Shown one piece after another: positions 48,155 to 62,362 of a stretch of DNA of 64,000 nucleotides. Every line of letters begins with the position of its first letter. Position 1 is the stretch's first letter. The notes under the pieces were generated by a model. That model did no database searches. It was not told where the DNA came from and saw nothing but the letters and a program-made list of their open reading frames with translations. The position numbers and the translations under genes are program-made. The stretch lies in the sequence record NC_061448.1. One strand, 5' to 3'.

Positions 48155-48183
48155 AAAAAGAAAGGGCAGCCGAAGCCGCCCTT
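48155..48183 (-). terminator. intrinsic terminator
   Basis: AAGGGCGGC-TTCG-GCTGCCCTTTCTTTTT on the - strand. Confidence 0.85.
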
Positions 48184-48463: not shown

Positions 48464-49063
48464 TCATGCGAATTTCAAAACGAGGTCGTTGACAATCACT
48501 GCTTTCGACTGGTCAGTGACAGCGGTATTGTTTGCATACACTTTACCACCAACAAGTTTCAAGTCAGCGTTTGAGTTCTCACTGCCAACACTACAGATAG
48601 CGAGGAACGCGACACCTGCATCGTTGTTGCCTGTCTGCAAGTTAATCGTGTTTGAGTACGCACCCGCAACGATACACCAAGTAGGCGTTTCATCTTTCAG
48701 GAAGTAACACGAACGATTATCACTGTACGAAACAGCAAGACGCATGTTCATCGCAGACGCAAGCAGCACAGGAACGTTAGCGGCGTTGAGAGTCATCGCA
48801 GCTTTGTTACCTGTCACACCGCCAACGTAGTCAGCAACGCGAGCGGACAACAGAGGACCGATGCGCGTATAGATTGCGTTGTTACCCGCCAACTGAGTTG
48901 CCTCTGCAAGCAGCTCCTGCACTTCTGCTTTAGTCGGCATCGCACCTGTATAAAACAGAATTGAGTTGGTGGTATTGGTGAACGATGTAGGTACTGCTGT
49001 TCCTACAAGACCGTTATACGCGTTACGCATCATCGCGTTTGCAGTAGCAGGGAGCATTTTCAT
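48464..49063 (-). CDS. array virion protein, short type
   Basis: FYTGAMPT...SVGSENSNADLKLVGG...DLVLKF. Confidence 0.75.
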   Translation of the reverse strand: MKMLPATANAMMRNAYNGLVGTAVPTSFTNTTNSILFYTGAMPTKAEVQELLAEATQLAGNNAIYTRIGPLLSARVADYVGGVTGNKAAMTLNAANVPVLLASAMNMRLAVSYSDNRSCYFLKDETPTWCIVAGAYSNTINLQTGNNDAGVAFLAICSVGSENSNADLKLVGGKVYANNTAVTDQSKAVIVNDLVLKFA

Positions 49064-49974
49064 TACACACCCTCCAGGAAGTTATCCGCGATACGAATCG
49101 TGAAATCAGATACAGCCATAGTACCATACTGACCAATCGAAGACGTGCCCAGAGTAATGTCAGTACCTACATCAAGCACAATGCCGTAGTAATCTTCCGG
49201 CACAGAACCCATATAAGTAGCGACGCCGGTAGGCACTGCGAGAGTCAGCGGCACAAGCACCACATGCGTGAATGCAGCAACAACGAAGTCACTCGCTTTC
49301 TCTGCATACGGCGTGAACAACAACTGGTTGGTTGTTGACGTGCCGTTCATGCTCAGGCGAAGTTTACGCGCAACAATATCAAGACCGTCGTTCATGCCAC
49401 TGACAACAACGATACGCGTCCAGACGAGAGTAGTAGGGTCCTGATACTCAAGACGGATGTTGCCTACGTTCAAGATGCTTGCGTTGGGCACAAAGAAAGA
49501 ACGGAAGCGCAGAGTACGACCGTAATCGTATTCAACCGTATCGTTAGCATCCCACGAAGGAGTTATGCCGGTAGTCACATCAGAACAAGCAGCAACGTTT
49601 GCCAGCACCTGTTGAGGAGTCTTCGACCAACCCGCTTGAGGAGTATAGCGAGAATACTCAGGGTAGACCGCATACGTCTGCACAGCTTGCTTGGTCAGTG
49701 GGTCAAACGTAACACGACCCTGGCCATATCCACCGATAGGCATCAGACTACGCACACGCGAGAACTGACGACACAGAATACCGTTAGCGTCTGCTACTTG
49801 CGTTTGGTACTTTAACTCAACAGCAGCGCGTGAACTCGCAACCAAATCGACGAACGCTTTAGGTACGCTGTTACTATTGCCGTTGCGAAAGAACGCTGCC
49901 CAGCCACTGGTATTAGCTGACGTACCGACTGTTTGCAGTAGCTGATACAGCGCTTGCTTTTCAGAGGTAATCAT
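49063..49974 (-). CDS. array virion protein, long type with a discoidin-like insert
   Basis: VEYDYG...VWTRI...ARKLRL. Confidence 0.72.
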   Translation of the reverse strand: MITSEKQALYQLLQTVGTSANTSGWAAFFRNGNSNSVPKAFVDLVASSRAAVELKYQTQVADANGILCRQFSRVRSLMPIGGYGQGRVTFDPLTKQAVQTYAVYPEYSRYTPQAGWSKTPQQVLANVAACSDVTTGITPSWDANDTVEYDYGRTLRFRSFFVPNASILNVGNIRLEYQDPTTLVWTRIVVVSGMNDGLDIVARKLRLSMNGTSTTNQLLFTPYAEKASDFVVAAFTHVVLVPLTLAVPTGVATYMGSVPEDYYGIVLDVGTDITLGTSSIGQYGTMAVSDFTIRIADNFLEGV

Positions 49975-49983
49975 AGATCCTCC

Positions 49984-50517
49984 TTAGAATTTGATACGCA
50001 GATCAGCAAGACGCACAGGCTGGTTGAGCGCAACAGTACCGCCGAAGATTCGCAGGTCAGCTGAGGAGTTTTCATCACCCACAGTGCCAGTAATAACTAC
50101 CGTGGCGTTGGTGCCAGCAACAAAGCCCGCCCAAGTATCCGCCGCAGAGGCAGCGGTAGTCATACGTAGCATGAACCACGTAGGAGTTCCGGCAGCCGCC
50201 ACAGTAGCGAGATTAGACTGACCGCCAATGGGCAGCGACAGAATGTTGTTGTCGTAGTCCATGACAGGCTGAATAGACTGAACTACACAGTTAGCCAGCA
50301 TCTGCGTCTGAGTTGCGAAAGCAGCGATAGCGGCGGCGTTCCACGTAAATTGAGAGGCAGTTGTTGTGTTCAGTGCAGTTAACTGGTCGTCAGTAGGAGG
50401 AGTGCCTGAGAACAGCGCAACATGAATCAAGTTTGCTGCGATGTTTGAGCCGGGAGTCATACGCTGAAAGAGAGCAGCCATTGCCTGAGTGCTATTGTAT
50501 GCTTTAGACGCGCGCAT
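49984..50517 (-). CDS. array virion protein, short type
   Basis: LFSGTPPT...GTVGDENSSADLRIFGG...DLRIKF; start corrected. Confidence 0.75.
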   Translation of the reverse strand: MRASKAYNSTQAMAALFQRMTPGSNIAANLIHVALFSGTPPTDDQLTALNTTTASQFTWNAAAIAAFATQTQMLANCVVQSIQPVMDYDNNILSLPIGGQSNLATVAAAGTPTWFMLRMTTAASAADTWAGFVAGTNATVVITGTVGDENSSADLRIFGGTVALNQPVRLADLRIKF

Positions 50518-50518
50518 A

Positions 50519-51583
50519 TTAGTAAACCTCCAGTGTTGCAGGACGGTAGGTGACAGTGAACGCACCGACAGATTGTTCTTGCCCAGGCACAACGGTAGCG
50601 TCGTTGAGCAGAAGATCGAAGTTAGTGCTCTGTTTGAGGTCGTCAGTAACCGTCAGTCCGTAATGAGAGAAGATGCGGCTGAACGACACAGGGTTGATGT
50701 TCATACCGATTGAGATACTTCCCCATGAAGAGCCGTAGATAACAGGCATCATCACTGCATGTTGGATCTTGCCCAGAGTACGAGGTGCAGTACCCGCAGC
50801 GTAGTCGCCATAGAAGTGCAGAGCAAACACACCGTAGCCCGTAGACGCAAACGGGTTAGTCGCAGCTTTAGACACAAGGCGGAAGCGACGTCCCTGAATA
50901 GTTGCAGGAAGCTGGTAGAACTTCTCTGAGTTGGCCGTGTTGATAGTCAGATTTGCAGTTACGTTGGCAACATCAGTCCAAGTGCTACCTACCTGCATCT
51001 GCAACCAGATAGCGTTTGCTACGGCTGTGTTTAAAACGTTGTTCGTACCTGCGGTCTGCGTGAATGCTCCGAGAGAGTTAACAACAACCTCAGCACCAAA
51101 ATCATATTCAGCAATAGTCCACGAACCATCCGCGTTAGCAGTCTTAACAGGCATTACAGAAGAAGTCGCAGACGGCGCAGCACACGGTCCCTGAACAGCA
51201 GATGTTGTTGAGCAGCAGCGATGCCACAAGATAGAAGCGAACAGCATGTCCAGTTGATACTGGTAGTTCGTGACGTTGGCGATAAGATCTTGGTACGACG
51301 CACTGTATCCCGCAAAAGTAACTTTAGGCAGAACGCGTTTACCACGGAAGCCTTGAGCAGTAGTCCACGCCGGTGGAGGTGAAGTCTGGTAGCTGGTGCT
51401 GTTAGGAATAAGGTTCTGTTGGCCGCCACCCGCTTGGGACTGTAAGAACGCGCGGCCAGATACCATGTTGTTCAGCAGCGTTTGCATGTCGTAGTTGACG
51501 GCAGCAGGAAGATTCCCTTCCATGAATGCACCGTACACGACGGTCAGTGCGTTTTGGTAAATCGGTAGAATTTTCATATTCAT
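50519..51583 (-). CDS. array virion protein, long type with a discoidin-like insert
   Basis: IAEYDFGAE...TWTDV...LPATIQGRRFRL. Confidence 0.75.
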   Translation of the reverse strand: MNMKILPIYQNALTVVYGAFMEGNLPAAVNYDMQTLLNNMVSGRAFLQSQAGGGQQNLIPNSTSYQTSPPPAWTTAQGFRGKRVLPKVTFAGYSASYQDLIANVTNYQYQLDMLFASILWHRCCSTTSAVQGPCAAPSATSSVMPVKTANADGSWTIAEYDFGAEVVVNSLGAFTQTAGTNNVLNTAVANAIWLQMQVGSTWTDVANVTANLTINTANSEKFYQLPATIQGRRFRLVSKAATNPFASTGYGVFALHFYGDYAAGTAPRTLGKIQHAVMMPVIYGSSWGSISIGMNINPVSFSRIFSHYGLTVTDDLKQSTNFDLLLNDATVVPGQEQSVGAFTVTYRPATLEVY

Positions 51584-51614
51584 GCCCTTGGTTTAAAGAC
51601 AGTTCAAATTAATG

Positions 51615-51638
51615 ACGTGGCAGCCGAAGCCACCACGT
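51615..51638 (-). terminator. UUCG hairpin between cassette pairs (weak terminator or processing site)
   Basis: ACGTGGTGGC-TTCG-GCTGCCACGT, no strong U-tract. Confidence 0.55.
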
Positions 51639-51643
51639 GTGTC

Positions 51644-52168
51644 TTACAGTTGAATGGTAAGATCGAGGAAGCGATATGCTTGACCTGTCTTAATCGTGCC
51701 GCCAATGAACTGTAGTTCTGCATCACTGCCTTGAGCACCGACACTACCAATCCAGAACGGACCAGTAAGACTCGCACTATAGTTGAACCCAGCCCAGTTG
51801 TTCGATGCGTTTGCAGGCAGAATGCGAGCTACATAGAACGTCGGTGTACCATCCGCAATGCCTGTCAGTGTAGAAGCCTGGCCAGCAAGGGGCAGCGTAA
51901 CGGTACGCGCATTGACGTTGACGATAGGCGTGATTGCAGCAGACGCAAGAACACCAAGAAAGTCAGCAGACGTCAGACCTAAGTTAGTAACAATCGTGCT
52001 CCAGTTGAGCAAGCTGTTCACAGTCCCTGGTCCCATCAGATCGAGTGCTTTACTGATCTTAGGCGCAGTGCCTTTGAACAGACCGATGTGAAGCCCGTTA
52101 GCTACAATCGCCGTAGCAGGAAACGCAGCATTCATCTGAGCAAGCGAAAGACCTTTGTTACTAATCAT
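51644..52168 (-). CDS. array virion protein, short type
   Basis: LFKGTAP...GSVGAQGSDAELQFIGG...DLTIQL. Confidence 0.75.
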   Translation of the reverse strand: MISNKGLSLAQMNAAFPATAIVANGLHIGLFKGTAPKISKALDLMGPGTVNSLLNWSTIVTNLGLTSADFLGVLASAAITPIVNVNARTVTLPLAGQASTLTGIADGTPTFYVARILPANASNNWAGFNYSASLTGPFWIGSVGAQGSDAELQFIGGTIKTGQAYRFLDLTIQL

Positions 52169-53241
52169 ACGCCCCTCCCGACGATTGCATCTTGTTTAAC
52201 ACGGAACATCGGCACAGGCGGTTCACCAAGCGCAGTGCTGTACGTTGTGTCAGGCATCACCACGTCATACGAACCTGCTTGCTTGAGATCGTCTGTGACA
52301 GTGAAGTGCGTCATGCTGAAATACCGTCCTGCAACAGTCGCTTCTACAGCAGGCCAGTTGAAGTGCCACTGGGTGCTATTCGCGTAGCTGGCGTTTGCTA
52401 TCAGGTTCAGTACAGACATATGCTTATACTTACCTAACGTGCGCGGTTTCGTTCCGGTATAGTTACCATAGAACTGCAAGCTAAACGGATAATGCCCTGT
52501 AGTAGACCACGGCCACGCGACTGTTTTGTTAATCAGGCGGAACTTCTGTGCCTTAACAGAAGTCGGCAGAGTGTAGGCCACGGCAGACCAGTTAGACGTA
52601 GTGCGCACATTCGCATAGCAGTCAACAGCATCTACCCACTGACCATCGACGTATGCTTGCAGCCAAGTACCGTTAGTGCCAAGTACCATAAGAGCAGCAA
52701 CAGCAGCACCGATAGAGACACCAACCAGCCCTTTTACTTCCATCTCAGCGCCAAAGTCATATTCAGCGATCAGCCAGTTGCCAGCTTCTGTCAGACTGTA
52801 CTGAGGACTCAAAAACAGAGCGGTATTGATTGAGAACTGAGTACCAACTGTGCCCATCTTGTGTGCTAAGATGGTTGTGGCAACACTCTCATTATACTTG
52901 CCGACAGTGGCAGGAAAACGTGCGTCCAGAGCAGGTAGACGAACTTTAGGCACGACACGCTGCATCGCATTGATAGCAGCACCGTAACCCAAGTTACCAC
53001 TGAACTCTACCCACGCAGGATAGAAGTTCGTGCTCAGGAATGTTGATGCAGTTACAGGAGTAAACTGCCAGCGAAACGGTGCACCCGACACAGGTTGCTT
53101 TTGAAGCAGACGAATAGCGATAGCATCATTGAACGTGCTGTGAATGCCACGCTCGCCACCAGCAGGTACATCCGTGTCGTACAACAGACCGAGAGAAAAC
53201 ACGGAGGCTACGTTCGCTGATTGATACGGAAAGAGTTCCAT
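52165..53241 (-). CDS. array virion protein, long type with a discoidin-like insert
   Basis: IAEYDFGAE...QWVDA...LPTSVKAQKFRL; clear paralog of 50519-51583. Confidence 0.75.
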   Translation of the reverse strand: MELFPYQSANVASVFSLGLLYDTDVPAGGERGIHSTFNDAIAIRLLQKQPVSGAPFRWQFTPVTASTFLSTNFYPAWVEFSGNLGYGAAINAMQRVVPKVRLPALDARFPATVGKYNESVATTILAHKMGTVGTQFSINTALFLSPQYSLTEAGNWLIAEYDFGAEMEVKGLVGVSIGAAVAALMVLGTNGTWLQAYVDGQWVDAVDCYANVRTTSNWSAVAYTLPTSVKAQKFRLINKTVAWPWSTTGHYPFSLQFYGNYTGTKPRTLGKYKHMSVLNLIANASYANSTQWHFNWPAVEATVAGRYFSMTHFTVTDDLKQAGSYDVVMPDTTYSTALGEPPVPMFRVKQDAIVGRGV

Positions 53242-53250
53242 AGCGCGTCC

Positions 53251-53829
53251 TTAGCTGAATGTGATGTTGTTGAGAGAGATAGTGCCATTCAGGTTGAACG
53301 TACCATCACCGTTGTCAGTGAGCGAAGCACCCATGCTGATCAAATCTTGCGGGGTGAACTCAAGCACGGAGGCAATCGTCGCAGTACCTGTAGTCATAGC
53401 AGTTGTGTTACTGCCGAGCATCAGATACATACGATTGAATGCTTTTGCGTAGCTGAAACGACCGAGCAGGTTGTTCAGGTCCAGTGTACGCTTACCACCA
53501 CCAGCATTAATGATGCGGACGTTACCGGAAGAAGCAAATGCAGTGTCCATGACGACACCCGGCGCGTTTGCTGTCAGATAAGTACGCAGCGTGTTAAGAC
53601 TGAACAGGGCTTGTGCTTGGTTATGCCACACTGAATCAGGTATCGTGTCACCCGAAGAAAACACAATCACTGCGGTAGGCTCTGTCGAGATATGACTGCC
53701 ACCCGCTTGTAGCGTGTTTGCGTTGTAGCTGGCCAGAGTGGACGGGGCCCACGGTTGGTCTATTGTAGGGTTGACAGCAGACCCTAAAGAATCGCCACGC
53801 ATATTGAGCATCGCTTTAGAGATATACAT
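53251..53829 (-). CDS. array virion protein, short type (divergent)
   Basis: IVFSSGDTIP pattern; coupled to its long partner. Confidence 0.7.
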   Translation of the reverse strand: MYISKAMLNMRGDSLGSAVNPTIDQPWAPSTLASYNANTLQAGGSHISTEPTAVIVFSSGDTIPDSVWHNQAQALFSLNTLRTYLTANAPGVVMDTAFASSGNVRIINAGGGKRTLDLNNLLGRFSYAKAFNRMYLMLGSNTTAMTTGTATIASVLEFTPQDLISMGASLTDNGDGTFNLNGTISLNNITFS

Positions 53830-54734
53830 CAGCTACTCCTTTGTGTGAAGCGAAGTTTAGGACAGTACATCATGTTCTTCCGATTAGGGATAACCTGATC
53901 AGTTAACTTGAATGGACCCTGAGTACCTACAGCGCCCGCAGTATACATGATCTCGTCGCTGTAATTAATGTCACCGTGCGTGAACGTGTTGCAGTGCGCG
54001 AGTGCTGCCCACGTAGGTGAAGTCACAACACTCGCAGAAGGTACGTCCACAGAACTAAGCAGAATGCGCATAGCACTCTGAGTAGTCAGGTTTGCAGATT
54101 TAAAGCGATAACGCTTAGACGCTTTAGGTGCAGACAGAGCCAACACCGTAGCGTCACCCGTGATAGACGTTGCAGTACCGAGTGTCGATTCAGTCTGACC
54201 ATCATCTGATAGTGCAACCAACTGGAAACCATCAGTCACGGTGCTATTGAATTTCAGGTGAGTCACAGTAACAGCAGCGTCGAACTCAACGTCAATATCA
54301 ACGCCAGCAAAACGAGTAGCAGGAACAGCAACGCTACCAGCACCCATAATCAAGGAGATGTTACGATCAGTAAGGCCTGAACGAGTGATACGATTAGGCA
54401 CAAGTTGAGATACCACAATAGCAGCAGTGCCAACGGTCCCATAGTACGATACCCCTTTAGGGATGTACTGAGATTGAAGGGCAAGTGCGATGACGTTGCC
54501 GTTCTCAATTCCAGTAATAGGGTTTCGCACGATACCGATAGACTGGTTGTACATATCGGCAAGTGACTTATTGTTGAAGGCCGCATCAAAGCCTTCTTTC
54601 GACGTAGGCAGTTTGCCACTGAACGCGAAGATATTCCAACCAGCGCCAACGTTAGGGTCGTTGACCAAGTTGGCCGTGTTCGCGTTAGAGCCAACAACTG
54701 ACTGCGCCATAGTACGTGTGTTAATGATCTTCAT
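53829..54734 (-). CDS. array virion protein, long type with a discoidin-like insert
   Basis: AFSGKLPT...DVEFDAAVTV...SAPKASKRYRF. Confidence 0.72.
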   Translation of the reverse strand: MKIINTRTMAQSVVGSNANTANLVNDPNVGAGWNIFAFSGKLPTSKEGFDAAFNNKSLADMYNQSIGIVRNPITGIENGNVIALALQSQYIPKGVSYYGTVGTAAIVVSQLVPNRITRSGLTDRNISLIMGAGSVAVPATRFAGVDIDVEFDAAVTVTHLKFNSTVTDGFQLVALSDDGQTESTLGTATSITGDATVLALSAPKASKRYRFKSANLTTQSAMRILLSSVDVPSASVVTSPTWAALAHCNTFTHGDINYSDEIMYTAGAVGTQGPFKLTDQVIPNRKNMMYCPKLRFTQRSS

Positions 54735-55189
54735 TAGCTCACCACCGGTGCAACAGATTTGTTATTTGCTTTCGTGTCAGACAGGTCAAGCGCAGGAACC
54801 GACACACGGAATACGATGTTGTCGTACAGTGGATCGATTGTCTGGTCAGTGACGAAAGAGCCTGTGACGAGAGCAGCATCAATACGAGTAGCCGGAAGAC
54901 TAGACGCGAACGTGCGTGGCGTAAACTTCGACTGCACCTGAGTAACGAGAGCACCCACCAGAACAATCTGATCAACCATGTTGACTTGTTGCGCCTTGAT
55001 CTGTGTGCGATGATACATAACAAGGCTAAGCTGGTCAGCGTCAGTTAGTTGCTGGCGCGTTGTTGCCGAAACACCTTCTGACGTGCTGCGCTTAAGGGGC
55101 TGAGAGTTGGCACTGATCTCAATCTGCGACATAACGAACACGAAGTCAGCAAAGAGATCCGGGTCATACGCAATAACTGGTACGAACAT
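54734..55189 (-). CDS. array virion protein, short type (divergent)
   Basis: 151 aa, coupled. Confidence 0.65.
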   Translation of the reverse strand: MFVPVIAYDPDLFADFVFVMSQIEISANSQPLKRSTSEGVSATTRQQLTDADQLSLVMYHRTQIKAQQVNMVDQIVLVGALVTQVQSKFTPRTFASSLPATRIDAALVTGSFVTDQTIDPLYDNIVFRVSVPALDLSDTKANNKSVAPVVS

Positions 55190-55190
55190 G

Positions 55191-56282
55191 TTATGCTCCT
55201 TGTCTCAGACGATAGTTGTTGATGATAGGAGTGTACGCTGCATTTGCACTCGCACCATAACCACCATTCACCTGCTGTACGGTCGTAGACACAGGTTTCT
55301 GAATTGCGTAGACAAACTGATCCACTTGCGTTCCATCGAGGAAGACTGTGTGCGTGTTGGTGGACGCATCGTACACATATTTGAAGTGAACGACACTGCC
55401 GGACCATAGAGCGGCATACGGTGAGATGGGACGAACAACCTTTGCAGGCGTACTGCTCTGGTTTGCGTTGTTCCAAATCAACAGACCCTTCTCGTTAGAG
55501 CGGTCGAATGCAATAGACAGTCGGTCTGTCAGACCTGTGCCAATTCGAAGCGGCGACCATTCAGCATAGTCAGCGTTACCTGACTGGTGATAATCACACT
55601 CGATAGTGAACGACTTGCTGCAATCGAAGTTCGGTACAGATGGGGTAGAGATGATACCGTTAGTACCCAAGTCGAAGCCTGAACCGTCGGCCATGATTTT
55701 GACATTCGAGGTAGTGAATGCAAGACCGGTGTAGTCAGTGAACGCACCAGTGTTGAAGCTACCTGTATCGAACGCTATTACTTCTGTGCCTGTCAAACCA
55801 GTAACGCCTGTAGTCTCAGTCCACATCTGCGTCAGGCTAATAGAGAACGCGAGAATGGTAATCTGCGTCTTGTAGCCGTTCGGGTCGAACTTAATGTTCA
55901 GGTCAGGATAGAGCAGAGTAACGTCAGTGCCCACAGTCAGACAGATAGGCAGGATGCCACCGAGAATCAGATTGGTTGGAACACCCTCTGCGGTTGCAGT
56001 AAGCAAACAGTCAGAGATAGACAGCTTATTACGGTCGATAGTGCGAACGCAGTTAGTGCCTTTAGCAAGCACGGTACAGATACCACTTGACGCAGCGAGA
56101 GCAGCATCGAACACATACCCAGCACCAGTAGCCGCCTGAAAGTTCAGGCACTTGTTAATGTCTGCTTCGGTGTAACCAGCATTGAGCTTCACCAGATAGC
56201 ATGACTTATCGTCCGCTGTAGTCTGAGCAAACAGGCGCGTCAACTGAGGCACAGCAGAGTTTGCGAATAACTTATAGTTCAT
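55191..56282 (-). CDS. virion protein with a C-terminal LamG/concanavalin-A-like domain
   Basis: SFTIECDY...WSGSVVHFKYVYD...TVFLDGTQV...INNYRL; start corrected. Confidence 0.7.
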   Translation of the reverse strand: MNYKLFANSAVPQLTRLFAQTTADDKSCYLVKLNAGYTEADINKCLNFQAATGAGYVFDAALAASSGICTVLAKGTNCVRTIDRNKLSISDCLLTATAEGVPTNLILGGILPICLTVGTDVTLLYPDLNIKFDPNGYKTQITILAFSISLTQMWTETTGVTGLTGTEVIAFDTGSFNTGAFTDYTGLAFTTSNVKIMADGSGFDLGTNGIISTPSVPNFDCSKSFTIECDYHQSGNADYAEWSPLRIGTGLTDRLSIAFDRSNEKGLLIWNNANQSSTPAKVVRPISPYAALWSGSVVHFKYVYDASTNTHTVFLDGTQVDQFVYAIQKPVSTTVQQVNGGYGASANAAYTPIINNYRLRQGA

Positions 56283-56283
56283 G

Positions 56284-57240
56284 TTATACCTCGGTAGACA
56301 GACGAAGCTGGGCGACAGAAGCGAACTCACCAGGACCGAGCGAAGTAGTCATCAACTCGATAGGCTTGCCACTACCAATCGCACCCACCTCACAGGCGAA
56401 GTAAGTAGGGACATAGCTGCCGTTAGCAAGAGCACCGTAGTTAGTGTCTTGGATAACCACCAGCGCTGTCTTGATTGTCTTGTACGCAGCATTGCGGCCA
56501 ATATCAGATGAAGTCACAGGCAGCACACGACGAGAGCCTGACGTCTGAATGAAGCGATAGCGTTTCGCAGCAGGAACAGCAGTGGCAATCATGTTGCCCT
56601 CTTGGTTCGCAGCAAGCGTCCACGCGACAGCAGTACCAACGACACCTGCATCGTCGATAGGAGCAATCGTACCAGCACATGCTGTAGACATATCGCTAAC
56701 GTCAGACAGCACAGAGTCAATCGTCACAGTGTAATCATAGGTCAGGTCGACAGTAGACAAGTGAATGCCCGGCATCAGTGCGTCGTGTGGAATACCTGCG
56801 TAATCCCACGGACGATAACCGGCAGCACCGATACCCCACAGTGCTTTGTTACCTGCATCGTTGCTGTTCGTGTACCCTGTTTGAATCTGAACAGACGCAG
56901 CGCCGTTATATCCGATAGGTCGTGCTTTAGAAGGGTAGTGGATAGTCGCACCGTTCTTGATCTCATACACATGACCTGAACGAGCTTTCCAACCTTCCTG
57001 CTGATCCATCAGAGGCAACAGACCTTCTGTTATAGGTCGAAGTGTCAGACGAGTAGCAGCAACAGCGTTATCGAACAGGTTGCGCATGTCGAGCAAATGC
57101 TGGGAGAAGTTACCCTGATCAGCCATCTCAGTGTCAAAGAAGAACACGTTGACAACATGACCATTAGCAGCGTTCGATGCCCAGCCGGAGCCAAGCGACA
57201 GCACACTGAAAGGCAGTAAGTTGTGTCCTAAGATGCGCAT
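56284..57240 (-). CDS. array virion protein, long type
   Basis: FFFD...LTYDYTVTIDSV...AAKRYRF...EVGAIGSGKPIEL. Confidence 0.7.
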   Translation of the reverse strand: MRILGHNLLPFSVLSLGSGWASNAANGHVVNVFFFDTEMADQGNFSQHLLDMRNLFDNAVAATRLTLRPITEGLLPLMDQQEGWKARSGHVYEIKNGATIHYPSKARPIGYNGAASVQIQTGYTNSNDAGNKALWGIGAAGYRPWDYAGIPHDALMPGIHLSTVDLTYDYTVTIDSVLSDVSDMSTACAGTIAPIDDAGVVGTAVAWTLAANQEGNMIATAVPAAKRYRFIQTSGSRRVLPVTSSDIGRNAAYKTIKTALVVIQDTNYGALANGSYVPTYFACEVGAIGSGKPIELMTTSLGPGEFASVAQLRLSTEV

Positions 57241-57737
57241 TAGAACTCCTTAGAATCTTTGACAACGGTAGCGAGGAACTTACCGTTACGCAGGTTGGAT
57301 GCAGACAGAATCAAGTCAGCACCGGAGCCAGCAGCACCGATAGTCAGAATCAAGAAGCCACCGTAAGGCGTGCTTGAGATATCCTTGTTGAAGACAATCA
57401 CGTTGTACGTGTTCAACAGGTCGCTGATAGTTCCAGCGAAGGTACCTTGCAGCGTAGCGCTCAGACGGAACTTATACTTATTTTCCTGACCGTGAATCCA
57501 ACGCACAGGGTTAACAGTAACAGAAGTCAGGTCAAGCACCGCTGTAGCACCTATTGCAGTCTGCACTGTAGTGCCGTCGGCAACAACAATGTTCGCAGGG
57601 TCAGGTACTTTAGCGAGGCAGATTGTCTTCTGCATGTTCGATAGGCCGTACTTCAACGGAGGATCAGTTGCAGGACGTTTACCCGCATCTGGAATCACAA
57701 TACCGTTGGCGACCAAAGGGAATGAAACTATTTCCAT
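57240..57737 (-). CDS. array virion protein, short type
   Basis: LTIGAAGSGADLIL motif. Confidence 0.72.
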   Translation of the reverse strand: MEIVSFPLVANGIVIPDAGKRPATDPPLKYGLSNMQKTICLAKVPDPANIVVADGTTVQTAIGATAVLDLTSVTVNPVRWIHGQENKYKFRLSATLQGTFAGTISDLLNTYNVIVFNKDISSTPYGGFLILTIGAAGSGADLILSASNLRNGKFLATVVKDSKEF

Positions 57738-57808
57738 TGTATATCTCCAGTTGACTCGCTTTAAATTACTGACAAGTGATCTTCATCAGGAATCAGTGTA
57801 GATGTTTA

Positions 57809-58702
57809 CTAAAGTTTAACAACAGGTGCATCGAGAAAGAATTTCTCATTCAGCATATTCTGTAGGCTAAGATTAATCACTTTGGTTCCACCAGCGCCTG
57901 TACTTGCGCTGTCATCATAATCTTCGCCTCGCTTGAGCACAATCATTTCATACTCTGTGGCGTCACCTGTTATCTTTCTTCGACGCGTACGGACAGCACC
58001 CATCCATGTGCAATAACTACTGCCACCGGAAACAACACCAGACATAGTGACGTTCTCTACTGGTCCTGAGTCTTTAGACACAGAGGTAACTGCCGCACTT
58101 CCGAATTGAAAGTTACTGAACGCACCTATACCCCACGCATTATTTGTCGTAATGTAGAATTTTCCACTAACAGATCTGTAGTTACCGAACTCGCTGCCGC
58201 TGTATTGAGTTTTTGACGACATACCTGAAAGTGTGTTCACATTAATGGTGGTTGTATAGAGACCGGCAATCGAGCCTCCTGCTTCGTACTTGTACGTTGT
58301 GAAGTTACCAGTTGCGAGTTGTCCGGTTCCTGTAGGAGGAACAAGAAAATACTTTATCTGACCGCCCGTGATTCTGGCATCAGTAGGAACTGAGTACCCC
58401 TTTCCATACGCGTAGCTATCTTCGAACAAAGTCCAACGTTGCCAATAATCTCTGACAGCACTAGTAATACCGAACGTAGGGATTTTATGTAGAACTACTG
58501 GGATGGTCGTGCTACGTACCGGACCAGACTGCACATAACTGTTAGTGGCTGCCACAGTCAGTGCAAAACAGTTAAAGGCTTGCTTGTACCAATCATCAAT
58601 GCTTTTAATAGAAGCAACATTGGTGCCACTATCAAACAGAAATAAACCATTCTGTAGAGAATCAGGTCGTACCGGCCTGTTAGAGAAGCTAACGAATTGC
58701 AT
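57809..58702 (-). CDS. array virion protein (G/S/T-rich)
   Basis: LFLFD N-terminal pattern. Confidence 0.7.
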   Translation of the reverse strand: MQFVSFSNRPVRPDSLQNGLFLFDSGTNVASIKSIDDWYKQAFNCFALTVAATNSYVQSGPVRSTTIPVVLHKIPTFGITSAVRDYWQRWTLFEDSYAYGKGYSVPTDARITGGQIKYFLVPPTGTGQLATGNFTTYKYEAGGSIAGLYTTTINVNTLSGMSSKTQYSGSEFGNYRSVSGKFYITTNNAWGIGAFSNFQFGSAAVTSVSKDSGPVENVTMSGVVSGGSSYCTWMGAVRTRRRKITGDATEYEMIVLKRGEDYDDSASTGAGGTKVINLSLQNMLNEKFFLDAPVVKL

Positions 58703-58712
58703 GGCATTTCCC

Positions 58713-59762
58713 TTAGAGCCTGTACCGACTCTCTATAAACAAACTTGAATATCCCTTAAGTGTAGCGCTCGGTATTTCATTCGGTACAATGTCGGACACA
58801 ACATCAAAGTCCACACTTGCCTTAGTCACGACAACATACACAGGTGCACCTTTCGCAAACGCGATTGCCATTGCTCCCCACTTGATTGCGTAAGCAGGAG
58901 TATCTGCATGAGTGCCTTGACCGAAGTAGCATTTGTCTACAGTGCTCGGTGAGTTGCTGTAGGCACCTGCGCTGTATGTCGTTGAATAAGACCAACCGCC
59001 ACCAGAGAAATAGTTCGTACCATACACACGAGTCTGATAGGGTTGAAACAGTCGAGGGAACGTTGTGTTTGCAAAGTTACCGTGATTATACGGCGTGTTG
59101 GCACTAGTGTTATTCAACGGCATTGTATTGACCGTAACAGTCGCAGTGTCCGCAGCAACATTGAACGAAGTAATGCCGACGTTCTGCAAGGACGACGTGA
59201 TGTTGTTTGACCAATAGCCTATTCCACTACCACCGCCACCCGTAATTGTACCGCTTGTACTCTGACTCATACCGACAGATGTTGTTGGTACAGAATACAC
59301 GCTCATGCTGTAGCCTGAACCATCAATAGCAGGCATCACCATATCGTTGTATGCAGGTACAAGAGGTGCAGGGTTGTTGTATGTGTCGAGCAGACTGCCT
59401 GTTCCCCATTGGGTAGTGCTTGTGTCATCATCCTTGCCAATAGCGTAGTATCGACAGAACATATCGAACGCAGACACAACACGGTTGCCGCCTGTATCAG
59501 AGTAGCCTGCTTTACGCACACCAGGAACATAGTTGTAGTACAGGTTGTTTCCCTTCCATCCTGCACCGCGAACACACTGCATCTGATTCTGGTCATCCAC
59601 CAGCGCACAGAACGAGCGAGACAGATTGAACTTACTGATTACATCAGGATAAGCTGACTTGTCTGTAGGAGGTTCCACGTCATCAGAGAACAAGAACATA
59701 CGGCGTCTGGCCATTTCGATCTTCTTCTCCAGCAACTGAGCTCCGTTAGATATGAAAAGCAT
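58713..59762 (-). CDS. array virion protein (G/S/T/Y/N-rich)
   Basis: MFLFSD N-terminal pattern; IKWGAMA. Confidence 0.7.
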   Translation of the reverse strand: MLFISNGAQLLEKKIEMARRRMFLFSDDVEPPTDKSAYPDVISKFNLSRSFCALVDDQNQMQCVRGAGWKGNNLYYNYVPGVRKAGYSDTGGNRVVSAFDMFCRYYAIGKDDDTSTTQWGTGSLLDTYNNPAPLVPAYNDMVMPAIDGSGYSMSVYSVPTTSVGMSQSTSGTITGGGGSGIGYWSNNITSSLQNVGITSFNVAADTATVTVNTMPLNNTSANTPYNHGNFANTTFPRLFQPYQTRVYGTNYFSGGGWSYSTTYSAGAYSNSPSTVDKCYFGQGTHADTPAYAIKWGAMAIAFAKGAPVYVVVTKASVDFDVVSDIVPNEIPSATLKGYSSLFIESRYRL

Positions 59763-59772
59763 AACTATTCCC

Positions 59773-60873
59773 TCATAGATTGATTGCTGTAGGACTATTC
59801 ACGTATGCAACAACACTGTCAGATACGATCAAGTCAGATACAGCAGCAATGTCCGTGCCAACCTGTTTTAGATCATCCTGCTCAGTGTCACCGATAGACA
59901 GAGACAGCAACTGTAGGCCAAAAGGATTCTCAAGCGCTATGGCTGCATGTTTAAGTATGCACGGAGGACTATCTTCGTTAGAGCCTACCATCTGTACATA
60001 CACAGGTTCATCATTATACATTGTGGGCCACGTCCCACCTAAGCCACTATAGGAGAAACGCACAGTCCCACCTCCTATAGGCCACATCTGTGTTTCGTTC
60101 TGAACGGCCATGAACATAATCGCAGGTATAGCGACTGAGTAAAACGCAGGCTGAACTATCTGCAACGCAGAACCATTACCGTAACTTTTAGATGTGTCCT
60201 GAGTCGTCAGATTTGTCTGAGTGAGCAAAGAGTTATTGCTCGGTGTATACGCACCAGCAGAAAACTGAATTGTATAACGATAGTTCCATCCAAGCCATGA
60301 ACTTGACTCACTCTTGGTAAGAGGCTGAGCCTGACCTCCAGCAAAACGGGGCACACACCAAACTCCACCTGTTGCGGCTTGTCGAATAGAAGCATTGACT
60401 GCTTGGGGAACGAAGTACATTCTGTTCTCAAGTTCATCCATCAGATTGCCGTATACTTGACCTATCACTTTGTTTATGAAAGGCGTAGACATATCAATGA
60501 GTGTGCCTTGAACAGTAGCACCTGCAACAACGGTACAGAAGCGTCGTGCATGGTCATCAAGTGTCTTGTTATCCGTGTTAGACCCGTAATAATACCAGTC
60601 TTTGCTTGTGGTATTCCTAGAGAAGCCTGACACGTCTGCGGTGTGTGCAAGATAATACTTGTTGTTCTTGATTCCTGACAGTGCAGTAGTCTTTAGCTTG
60701 TTGCCAGTTAATCCCCACGATGTTCCTCGGCAATTCGCTAGGCTCTTGAGCAACTCAGATCGAGACTGTTGCACCGTCGCTCTGTCCACAGTATCATCAA
60801 ACAGAAACATAGTGGACAGTGCATCCTTGCGCATCTTATTTGTCTTTACCGCGCCGACAGAATGAAATTGCAT
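59773..60873 (-). CDS. array virion protein
   Basis: MFLFDD N-terminal pattern; LKHAAIA...SIGDTEQDDL; start corrected. Confidence 0.7.
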   Translation of the reverse strand: MQFHSVGAVKTNKMRKDALSTMFLFDDTVDRATVQQSRSELLKSLANCRGTSWGLTGNKLKTTALSGIKNNKYYLAHTADVSGFSRNTTSKDWYYYGSNTDNKTLDDHARRFCTVVAGATVQGTLIDMSTPFINKVIGQVYGNLMDELENRMYFVPQAVNASIRQAATGGVWCVPRFAGGQAQPLTKSESSSWLGWNYRYTIQFSAGAYTPSNNSLLTQTNLTTQDTSKSYGNGSALQIVQPAFYSVAIPAIMFMAVQNETQMWPIGGGTVRFSYSGLGGTWPTMYNDEPVYVQMVGSNEDSPPCILKHAAIALENPFGLQLLSLSIGDTEQDDLKQVGTDIAAVSDLIVSDSVVAYVNSPTAINL

Positions 60874-60903: not shown

Positions 60904-60933
60904 AAAATGGCCCGTACCGTTAAGATACAGGCC
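60904..60933 (-). terminator. probable intrinsic terminator
   Basis: GGCCTGTATC-TTAAC-GGTACGGGCC-ATTTT. Confidence 0.6.
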
Positions 60934-60939
60934 AATAGG

Positions 60940-61532: not shown

Positions 61533-61754
61533 TTAGGCGATTCGCACTTGACCCGTAACTGCATACGGGAAAGTAACTTTGACAGTATTGTCATCGACGA
61601 TAATCACATCGAGCGGAAGAACCTGATGAAGTTTCCCATCAGGCTGCATCGTTGCTGTAGTAATCGCGACCATACGACCGAAGTTATGCGTAATCGTCCA
61701 TTCAGAAGCGGCCTCTTCCTGTTTAAAGGTACGACCCATCGAATAGTTGATCAT
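61533..61754 (-). CDS. small virion protein with one W-x-I-x-HN repeat
   Basis: ASEWTITHNFG...VKVTF. Confidence 0.7.
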   Translation of the reverse strand: MINYSMGRTFKQEEAASEWTITHNFGRMVAITTATMQPDGKLHQVLPLDVIIVDDNTVKVTFPYAVTGQVRIA

Positions 61755-61765
61755 GCGAATCTCCC

Positions 61766-62362
61766 TTAGTACAGAATAACAGTACCAGACTCAGGATTCT
61801 CGAAAGTAATCGTAAGCTGGTTAGTGCTATCATGCACAATAGATTTCGGCTGTACTTCTTCCGTGCCTTGATAGACACGCACAGCAGGATTATAACCGAG
61901 GTTGTGAGTTACTACCCACGAAGCTGAATCTTCGAAAGATGCAGTGAACGCAACGGTAGGTGCAGGCTGACCGTTCTCAACACCAGACAGCAACACAGCA
62001 GTACCGGCAACGGGCTCAGGCCACAGAATGATTGTGGTGTCAGCGTCTTGTGCGTGAATAGAGGACGGCATAACAACATCACCATTCTCGTCGTAGCACT
62101 GAACGAGCGGCGTTGCGATGTTCATGTTGTGCTTCACTTCCCAGCGTGAAGATGCGGACGCTTGTGCGTAGCGGTACATCGTCATCTGTTGAGTCAGTGG
62201 AACCCAGATAGGCAGGTCACCTAACTCTACACAGAACATCAGGCGCTTGTCCATGAAGATAGCCATACCCGGTTGCGGGTTTTCAGGCCAATCTTGAACT
62301 TCTGCGAACTTGAAGTTCTTGATCGAGCCAAACTCTAAATCGAGCGTCCCGAGGACTTTCAT
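61766..62362 (-). CDS. virion protein with two W-x-V-x-HN repeats
   Basis: RWEVKHNMN and SWVVTHNLGYNPAV; start corrected. Confidence 0.72.
   Translation of the reverse strand: MKVLGTLDLEFGSIKNFKFAEVQDWPENPQPGMAIFMDKRLMFCVELGDLPIWVPLTQQMTMYRYAQASASSRWEVKHNMNIATPLVQCYDENGDVVMPSSIHAQDADTTIILWPEPVAGTAVLLSGVENGQPAPTVAFTASFEDSASWVVTHNLGYNPAVRVYQGTEEVQPKSIVHDSTNQLTITFENPESGTVILY

Follow-up and report, generated by a model that had tools for sequence, protein, structure and literature searches.

A gene array of long/short pairs in Erwinia jumbo phage pEa_SNUABM_1 encodes candidate tail-periphery connectors with lectin-like heads

Gene layout and sequence groups of the array

Erwinia phage pEa_SNUABM_1 (NC_061448.1) is an Alexandravirus and a fire-blight jumbo phage with a genome of 266,939 bp, and the window analysed here is the initial 64 kb of that genome. 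It contains an array of fifteen open reading frames (ORFs) on the minus strand, gp080 to gp094, that together span 48464-60873. Every one of them is annotated 'hypothetical protein', and the fifteen consecutive genes are likewise blank in each of about sixty related jumbo-phage genomes; most of them now have an identity that can be tested. The genes for tail fibres and virion structural proteins share its strand, and the array follows just downstream of them in the direction of transcription.

Five long genes in the array are each followed by a short one. These pairs are gp089 (55191..56282, 363 amino acids (aa)) with gp088 (54734..55189, 151 aa), gp087 (53829..54734, 301 aa) with gp086 (53251..53829, 192 aa), gp085 (52165..53241, 358 aa) with gp084 (51644..52168, 174 aa), gp083 (50519..51583, 352 or 354 aa depending on which of two in-frame ATGs is used) with gp082 (49984..50517, 177 aa), and gp081 (49063..49974, 303 aa) with gp080 (48464..49063, 199 aa). 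Upstream of the pairs are the long gene gp090 (56284..57240, 318 aa), the short gene gp091 (57240..57737, 165 aa), and three genes of a variable slot, gp092 to gp094. Spacing within pairs ranges from -4 to +1 nucleotides (nt): gp080 overlaps the stop codon of gp081 by 1 nt, and the overlap between gp084 and gp085 is 4 nt. The spacing is equally tight throughout gp091-gp086, so that coupling characterises the whole run and not the pairs specifically. A first-pass annotation, made from the sequence alone, had listed the same ORFs, lengths, and five long/short pairs, and we agree with it throughout, the start of gp083 being the only ambiguity.

That annotation had also described all fifteen genes as paralogs, which our comparisons contradict. 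All-versus-all hhalign on ortholog alignments, with BLASTP run alongside, yields four small groups only: gp080/082/084 (the short family), gp081/083/085, gp087/090, and gp093/094. Within the short family, gp080 matches gp082 at 99.1% and gp084 at 97.2%, while gp082 matches gp084 at 99.9% (hhalign). In the second group gp083 matches gp085 at 100%, and gp081 matches gp083 at 95% over 146-301. The gp087 profile matches that of gp090 at 94.5%, and gp093 and gp094 match at 89-96% across their N- and C-terminal parts. No hhalign link was found between gp088 and any array group, and when the short-family profile was compared directly to that of the long family, no relation emerged. An iterative hidden Markov model (HMM) search in the arrays of eleven phages did not recruit gp086, gp088, or gp091 to the short family.

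Against every one of the window's 286 ORFs we ran HMMs of two motifs, one N-terminal and one C-terminal, that had been proposed as common to the array proteins. Only gp080, gp082, and gp084 carry the C-terminal motif at a significant level, with gp091 as the best outsider at a weak independent E-value of 0.11. The N-terminal motif shows no excess over chance beyond the same three proteins. Matches to PHROGs are to families of unknown function only (gp080 and gp082 to phrog_17152, gp083 to phrog_22190, and gp088 to phrog_28837 only), and gp092 has no match among them. Pfam scans of all fifteen array proteins and their flanks returned nothing meaningful, with no relevant family at E<=1. In a word search, the short and long families were restricted to the related phage clade.

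Gene order from gp091 to gp080 is kept in seven IMG/VR loci and in phages Y3, JA13, Yoloswag, and Yersinia phage fHe-Yen9-02; the synteny of gp080-gp091 takes in Alexandra-, Sasquatch-, Salmond-, and Yoloswag-viruses as well as the Yersinia phage. Array genes are 56-90% identical compared to 77-100% for the flanks, meaning that the array diverges faster. The best-conserved member is gp091, with 95-97% identity within the genus.

The long and short genes of a pair duplicate together. In the trees, the gp083, gp085, and gp084 clades each hold both Alexandravirus and Y3 sequences (the gp082 group does not resolve). We read the separation of gp083 from gp085, and likewise that of gp082 from gp084, as older than the divergence of Alexandravirus and Y3. 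Gain and loss of pairs across related phages, a point raised by the first-pass annotation, is visible in the same trees: Yoloswag and JA13 have a single copy each of the long and the short gene, and the Yersinia phage has extra long and short genes of its own. The composition of the clades and the extra genes of the Yersinia phage fit duplication of whole pairs on at least two occasions.

In the record of Salmonella phage Sen-NF (PV359490.1, L016; 108 kb), whose coding sequences abut without gaps, a gp098-like gene is immediately followed by a gp091 homolog (46% identity). The record appears to be that of a relative, either partial or annotated in an unusual way.

Fold of the short proteins and domains of the long ones

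We obtained an AlphaFold2 (AF2) model of gp084 with a predicted local distance difference test (pLDDT) score of 85 and compared it to known structures with VIA. The best match is 9rkv_A, with Z 10.5 and a root-mean-square deviation of 3.0 over 130/139 residues; the runner-up has Z 6.3. We confirmed that 9rkv_A is gp014, the garland protein of Agrobacterium phage 7-7-1. Weaker matches, with 126-132 residues aligned, are to A511 gp105 (6hhk_A, Z 5.3), T4 gp8 (1n7z_A, Z 5.1), and an arm segment of phi812 (9fko_A, Z 5.1), and of all these only the match to 9rkv_A rises clear of background. The model comparison supports the view that the short proteins have the connector fold predicted here, that of gp8, gp105, and the garland proteins.

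In phage 7-7-1, gp014 is a homodimeric garland protein around the distal parts of the tail fibres, and it is a resolved component of the virion at 36 dimers per particle (PMC12796354). The garland proteins of phage Milano have the gp8/gp105 fold and form dimers arranged like beads on a string (PMC10811340). In phi812, C-terminal strands connect the dimers via a scaffold linker (PMC13433997). Dimers of the gp8/gp105 type are chained by C-terminal strands, and in the short family it is the C-terminal strands that carry the best-conserved motif, the C-terminal one.

In Y3, JA13, and Yoloswag, the gp091 orthologs bear the annotation 'putative membrane protein'. Their hydrophobic stretch coincides with the conserved C-terminal strand motif of the short family, and the label is therefore probably wrong.

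Garland proteins are the closest structural counterparts of gp084. At about 140 aa, 7-7-1 gp014 (9RKV chain A) and Milano gp125/gp127 are both small; they have a fold like that of gp084 and are encoded beside fibre genes. In Milano, the two garland paralogs flank the larger gp126, which has a globular domain, and this resembles the alternation of long and short genes in the array. The garland phages have one or two such genes without a lectin insert, whereas the pEa_SNUABM_1 array has about eleven. The short proteins of the array are also longer (165-199 aa), with extra N-terminal helices relative to the garlands, and their sequence homology to them is undetectable (P 0.02). T4 gp8, A511 gp105, phi812 gp118, and Goslar gp32 connect the baseplate to the fibre network; they have the same general fold and give a weak structural match and none by sequence. 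Each of these is a single-copy gene whose product is present in many copies per virion, whereas the array consists of many diverged paralogs, several of which have added binding domains.

The fold extends beyond the short family. A Foldseek search of BFVD with the gp084 model returned Yoloswag and JA13 proteins that we took as orthologs of gp080, gp086, and gp089, an assignment that we made from organism and length. The matches assigned to gp086 are a Yoloswag protein of 186 aa (prob 0.95) and a JA13 protein of 197 aa (prob 0.80), and those assigned to gp089 are a JA13 protein of 339 aa (prob 1.00) and a Yoloswag protein of 351 aa (prob 0.98). We also extended the short-family profile with 102 cluster representatives from a full HMM search. 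Against this extended profile, gp091 matches over 126 columns (hhalign 90%, E 1.4e-6), making it a distant member of the short family, and gp086 is co-linear across 140 columns (33%, P 4.6e-4), so that the gp084 fold is probable for gp086 as well. When the predicted inserts were deleted from the long proteins, gp090 matched the short profile almost end to end (66-83%, E 8.6e-6) and gp087 matched it at 46-58%; the scaffold part of gp083 matched gp090 at 57% and gp081 at 64%. Among the 78 comparisons, about 0.01 would be expected to reach P 1e-4 by chance.

By our estimate, about eleven of the fifteen members share one scaffold. The plain form of this scaffold would be represented by gp080, gp082, gp084, gp091, and probably gp086, and the long proteins would consist of the scaffold plus a lectin-type domain. 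No link to the scaffold was found for gp088 or gp092-094 by profile comparisons or by fold matches of orthologs. The idea of a common scaffold with swapped heads of glycan-binding type, first put forward for the whole array, holds up better than sequence alone would indicate for the eleven or so members connected by profile or fold, and is not supported for these four.

The clearest head is in gp085. Its AF2 model (pLDDT 87, predicted TM score 0.89) has a jelly-roll at residues 88-267 of the discoidin/F5-8C/CBM32/F-lectin type, for which the best Z is 11.3 and 216 chains reach Z>=8. Foldseek with gp085 gave sixty-five PDB matches at E<=1e-3 with probability 1.00. What remains of the protein on the N- and C-terminal sides comes to some 178 residues in all, which is as long as a short protein. 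A comparison of head and scaffold conservation by domain in gp085 found no difference. When the discoidin regions alone are compared, the smaller middle domain of gp081 matches the insert of gp083 at 96% (hhalign). The best Pfam match to F5_F8_type_C (PF00754) in the clade is that of the JA13 ortholog of gp081 (E 3.2e-4, 21.3 bits, under the cut-off of 28.2), and one relative of gp085 matches the family at E 0.016. None of the window's own proteins matches F5_F8_type_C at E<=1, and the gathering score is not reached anywhere across the clade.

For gp087, ESM features give 0.92 and 0.91 to F5/8 type C clusters, and hhalign comparisons of the discoidin regions of gp087 and gp090 with those of gp081, gp083, and gp085 are not significant (P 0.01-0.06). 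A discoidin domain in the middle of these two proteins is suggested by these data. The first-pass annotation had counted five members with a discoidin-like insert. We can place gp085 among them by fold, gp083 by close paralogy, and gp081 by its profile match of 95%; for gp087 and gp090 the proposal is suggestive. A discoidin/CBM32-like domain would then be inserted mid-protein in gp081, gp083, gp085, and probably gp087 and gp090.

In gp089, a domain of about 150 aa with the short-protein fold appears to be followed by a LamG/ConA-like domain fused at the C-terminus. Four of nine gp089 orthologs match Laminin_G_3 (PF13385; best E 3.5e-5), and the window's gp089 itself has no match. The Atlas structure of gp089 gives template modelling (TM) scores of 0.45-0.65 to Laminin_G_3 clusters over 160-363, in a model with a pLDDT of only 0.59. 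These results lend some support to a LamG-like C-terminal half and fit the earlier assignment of LamG to one long member. The gp089 homolog of fHe-Yen9-02 (genes 314c and 313c; L012:4222-5063) is the 150-aa N-terminal domain alone, without LamG, and in the JA13 homolog an unrelated sequence stands in place of the C-terminal part. Homologs in which the C-terminal part is absent or replaced are direct evidence that heads are exchanged while the base stays the same.

Compared to known discoidin/CBM32 and LamG modules, the array has the jelly-roll folds in common, at gp085 88-267 and probably at gp089 160-363. It differs in that the discoidin/CBM32 domain is an insert inside another domain and not a terminal module, and in that none of the window's own proteins scores above the Pfam thresholds for the discoidin and LamG domains. 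Judging by domain type, the heads may bind sugars.

Phage NCTB has a sixteen-gene array of its own (BN7874_183-198, L024:5236-18907), with short proteins of 136-184 aa and long proteins of 250-402 aa. Five of its members have a short-family sequence match and nine have a gp084 fold match (assigned by length). This array adjoins a 'tail assembly' gene, and its position in the genome is unlike that in the Erwinia phages.

Possible placement on the virion

We tentatively favour a reading, to which we would give slightly less than an even chance, in which the array encodes accessory connectors of the tail periphery, built on one beta-rich scaffold, carrying lectin-like heads and belonging to the baseplate/fibre network. 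From the fold we infer both the mode of assembly and the location. The solved relatives form dimers, which C-terminal beta-strand augmentation links into arms, spokes, or garlands (PMC10811340, PMC13433997). By analogy, each long/short pair could be a heterodimer-like bead, with the beads connected to one another at the periphery of the baseplate and around the fibres. Lectin heads facing outward would then give weak multivalent binding of host surface polysaccharide before irreversible attachment. The upstream neighbour gp098 has a homolog in the related phage PaBG, gp257, which is a virion protein. Two further PaBG virion proteins encoded at the equivalent position, gp261 and gp263, were considered as proteomic support for the array and set aside, as they have no detectable similarity to array members.

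Several results weigh against these connectors. Z scores of about 5 to gp8 and gp105 are in the range of common beta arrangements, and PRMT barrels score equally. The extended short-family profile, compared to 7-7-1 gp014 by hhalign, gives a probability of 2.3% (P 0.02), and searches of PDB sequences with gp084, gp085, and gp089, both as single sequences and as profiles, found no match and no phage protein. We ourselves chose the points at which the inserts of the long proteins were cut out, and the alignments lack depth. In gp081, gp083, and gp085, the N- and C-terminal parts fail to match the short profile (P 0.06-0.3), and PaBG lacks any match to the profile of the short family. In the literature we found no virion proteomics or cryo-EM for Alexandra-, Sasquatch-, Salmond-, or Yoloswag-viruses.

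The pairing of genes might also have a different meaning. Each pair could consist of a receptor-binding protein and its own assembly chaperone, in the style of a fibre and Tfa, in which case the short proteins could leave the virion. A long gene followed by a small, translationally coupled gene is what such a system would look like, the members of a pair duplicate together, and the gene for 7-7-1 gp014 likewise follows immediately after a long tail-fibre gene. We consider chaperones improbable, given that gp014 is resolved in the 7-7-1 virion at its 36 dimers per particle, that gp091 and the N-terminal domain of gp089 have the short fold yet are not downstream partners, and that the long proteins themselves appear to contain the scaffold.

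If the proteins do remain on the particle, they could be located along the tail and not at its end. Y3, AD1, and the JA phages all have the array, and they have been described as 'hairy Myoviridae' (PMC6143709; PMC13282480), so the array proteins could be the 'hairs' or whiskers of the contractile tail, formed by chains of scaffold dimers with lectin heads projecting from the sheath. Filaments can be made by gp8-like dimers, as in the case of Goslar gp32, and in chimalliviruses a different paralog family makes clouds of filaments associated with the tail (PMC13742148). All solved relatives of the fold, however, are located on the baseplate, on its arms, or at fibre tips and not on the sheath, and no sheath-binding element was identified in the array proteins. 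Lu11 has likewise been called hairy (PMC6143709), yet tblastn with gp084 matched no Pseudomonas phage record, and its relative PaBG is the phage that lacks a match to the short-family profile. A location on the sheath therefore seems unlikely to us. Slightly more doubtful still is a bolder version in which the array supplies the building blocks of the hairs of hairy jumbo myoviruses in general, as filaments of diverged gp8-like dimers whose differing lectin heads would make up a multivalent glycan-scanning coat. Day et al. also noted ill-defined structures at the tail's base in AD1 and the JA phages (PMC6143709). The array offers concrete candidates both for the unexplained hairs of this lineage and for these unclear baseplate structures.

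A last possibility is that the array is non-structural and encodes, for example, lectin-like proteins, secreted or intracellular, whose target during infection would be the host envelope. All fifteen genes are annotated as hypothetical in a clade for which we found no virion proteomics, and immediately downstream are envelope-related genes (a lipoprotein and small membrane proteins). It is nevertheless a phage virion protein that gives the best fold match, the array is embedded in the strand block of the tail fibres, and the 'membrane protein' label of the gp091 orthologs falls on a conserved strand motif. We regard a non-structural array as very improbable.

Peripheral connectors of the kind favoured here have a parallel in the DUF7941 family of chimalliviruses (Goslar gp22/gp23), in which a jumbo phage likewise encodes about ten paralogs with one assembly module, some of them with carbohydrate-binding heads (PMC13742148). 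That family has been proposed to form a cloud of filaments at the baseplate periphery that would be the first to touch the host (PMC13742148). In contrast to the array, DUF7941 genes are dispersed, are not arranged in long/short pairs, and belong to an unrelated phage family. The module is presumably a different one: the array proteins have no relevant Pfam match at E<=1, in a copy of Pfam for which the presence of DUF7941 is unconfirmed.

We found no published description of this array. The fold and the domains are known, and what is undescribed in the literature that we found is a gp8/garland scaffold present as a tandem array of co-duplicating pairs that carry inserted discoidin and fused LamG domains. 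If the connector reading is right, a fold known from baseplate connectors has undergone a roughly tenfold multiplication as a carrier of sugar-binding-type domains, a build for host recognition that is undescribed for this fold.

The variable slot and flanking features

Between the conserved genes gp095 and gp091 lies a hypervariable slot (57809-60873) that holds two to five genes per related phage, with varying content. In pEa_SNUABM_1 these are gp092 (57809..58702, 297 aa), gp093 (58713..59762, 349 aa; phrog_21316), and gp094 (59773..60873, 366 aa), of which the last two belong to a slot family. Slot proteins have in common a conserved N-terminus of about 60 aa, followed by divergent or unrelated remainders. 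A tblastn search over 50,697 phage records found gp092 in pEa_SNUABM_1 only, and the nearest relatives of gp094 have just 55% identity. The N-terminal pattern is present in the ORFan gp092, and beyond it gp092-094 share nothing more with other slot proteins. A shared N-terminus with fast-changing remainders is the usual layout of receptor-binding proteins, and gp092-094 may be cassette-like proteins of this type.

These phages serve in fire blight cocktails. Differences in host range and in dependence on exopolysaccharide would most obviously be sought in the gp092-094 slot and the lectin heads.

Three hairpins lie on the minus strand in this region. A scan for terminator-like elements placed one of them at 60908..60934, between gp095 and gp094, at the upstream edge of the array. 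The scan and the intergenic sequence together identified, between gp084 and gp083 (51615..51638), a GC-rich hairpin whose loop is UUCG, as well as a terminator-like UUCG hairpin with a T-run after gp079 (48162..48183), at the end of the unit. The hairpins at 51615-51638 and 48162-48183 are near-identical, with the UUCG loop and the core stem in common, and may be a reused terminator or RNA-processing element.

On the 3' side of the array is the small block encoding the lipoprotein and the small membrane proteins. On the other side, gp095 has weak PHROG matches to tail-fibre families. It is preceded by gp096 and gp097 (61533-62362), and the 73-aa gp096 resembles two distinct segments of gp097 (hhalign 86%). 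Conservation of this gene pair reaches as far as PaBG, where the counterparts are gp258 and gp259.

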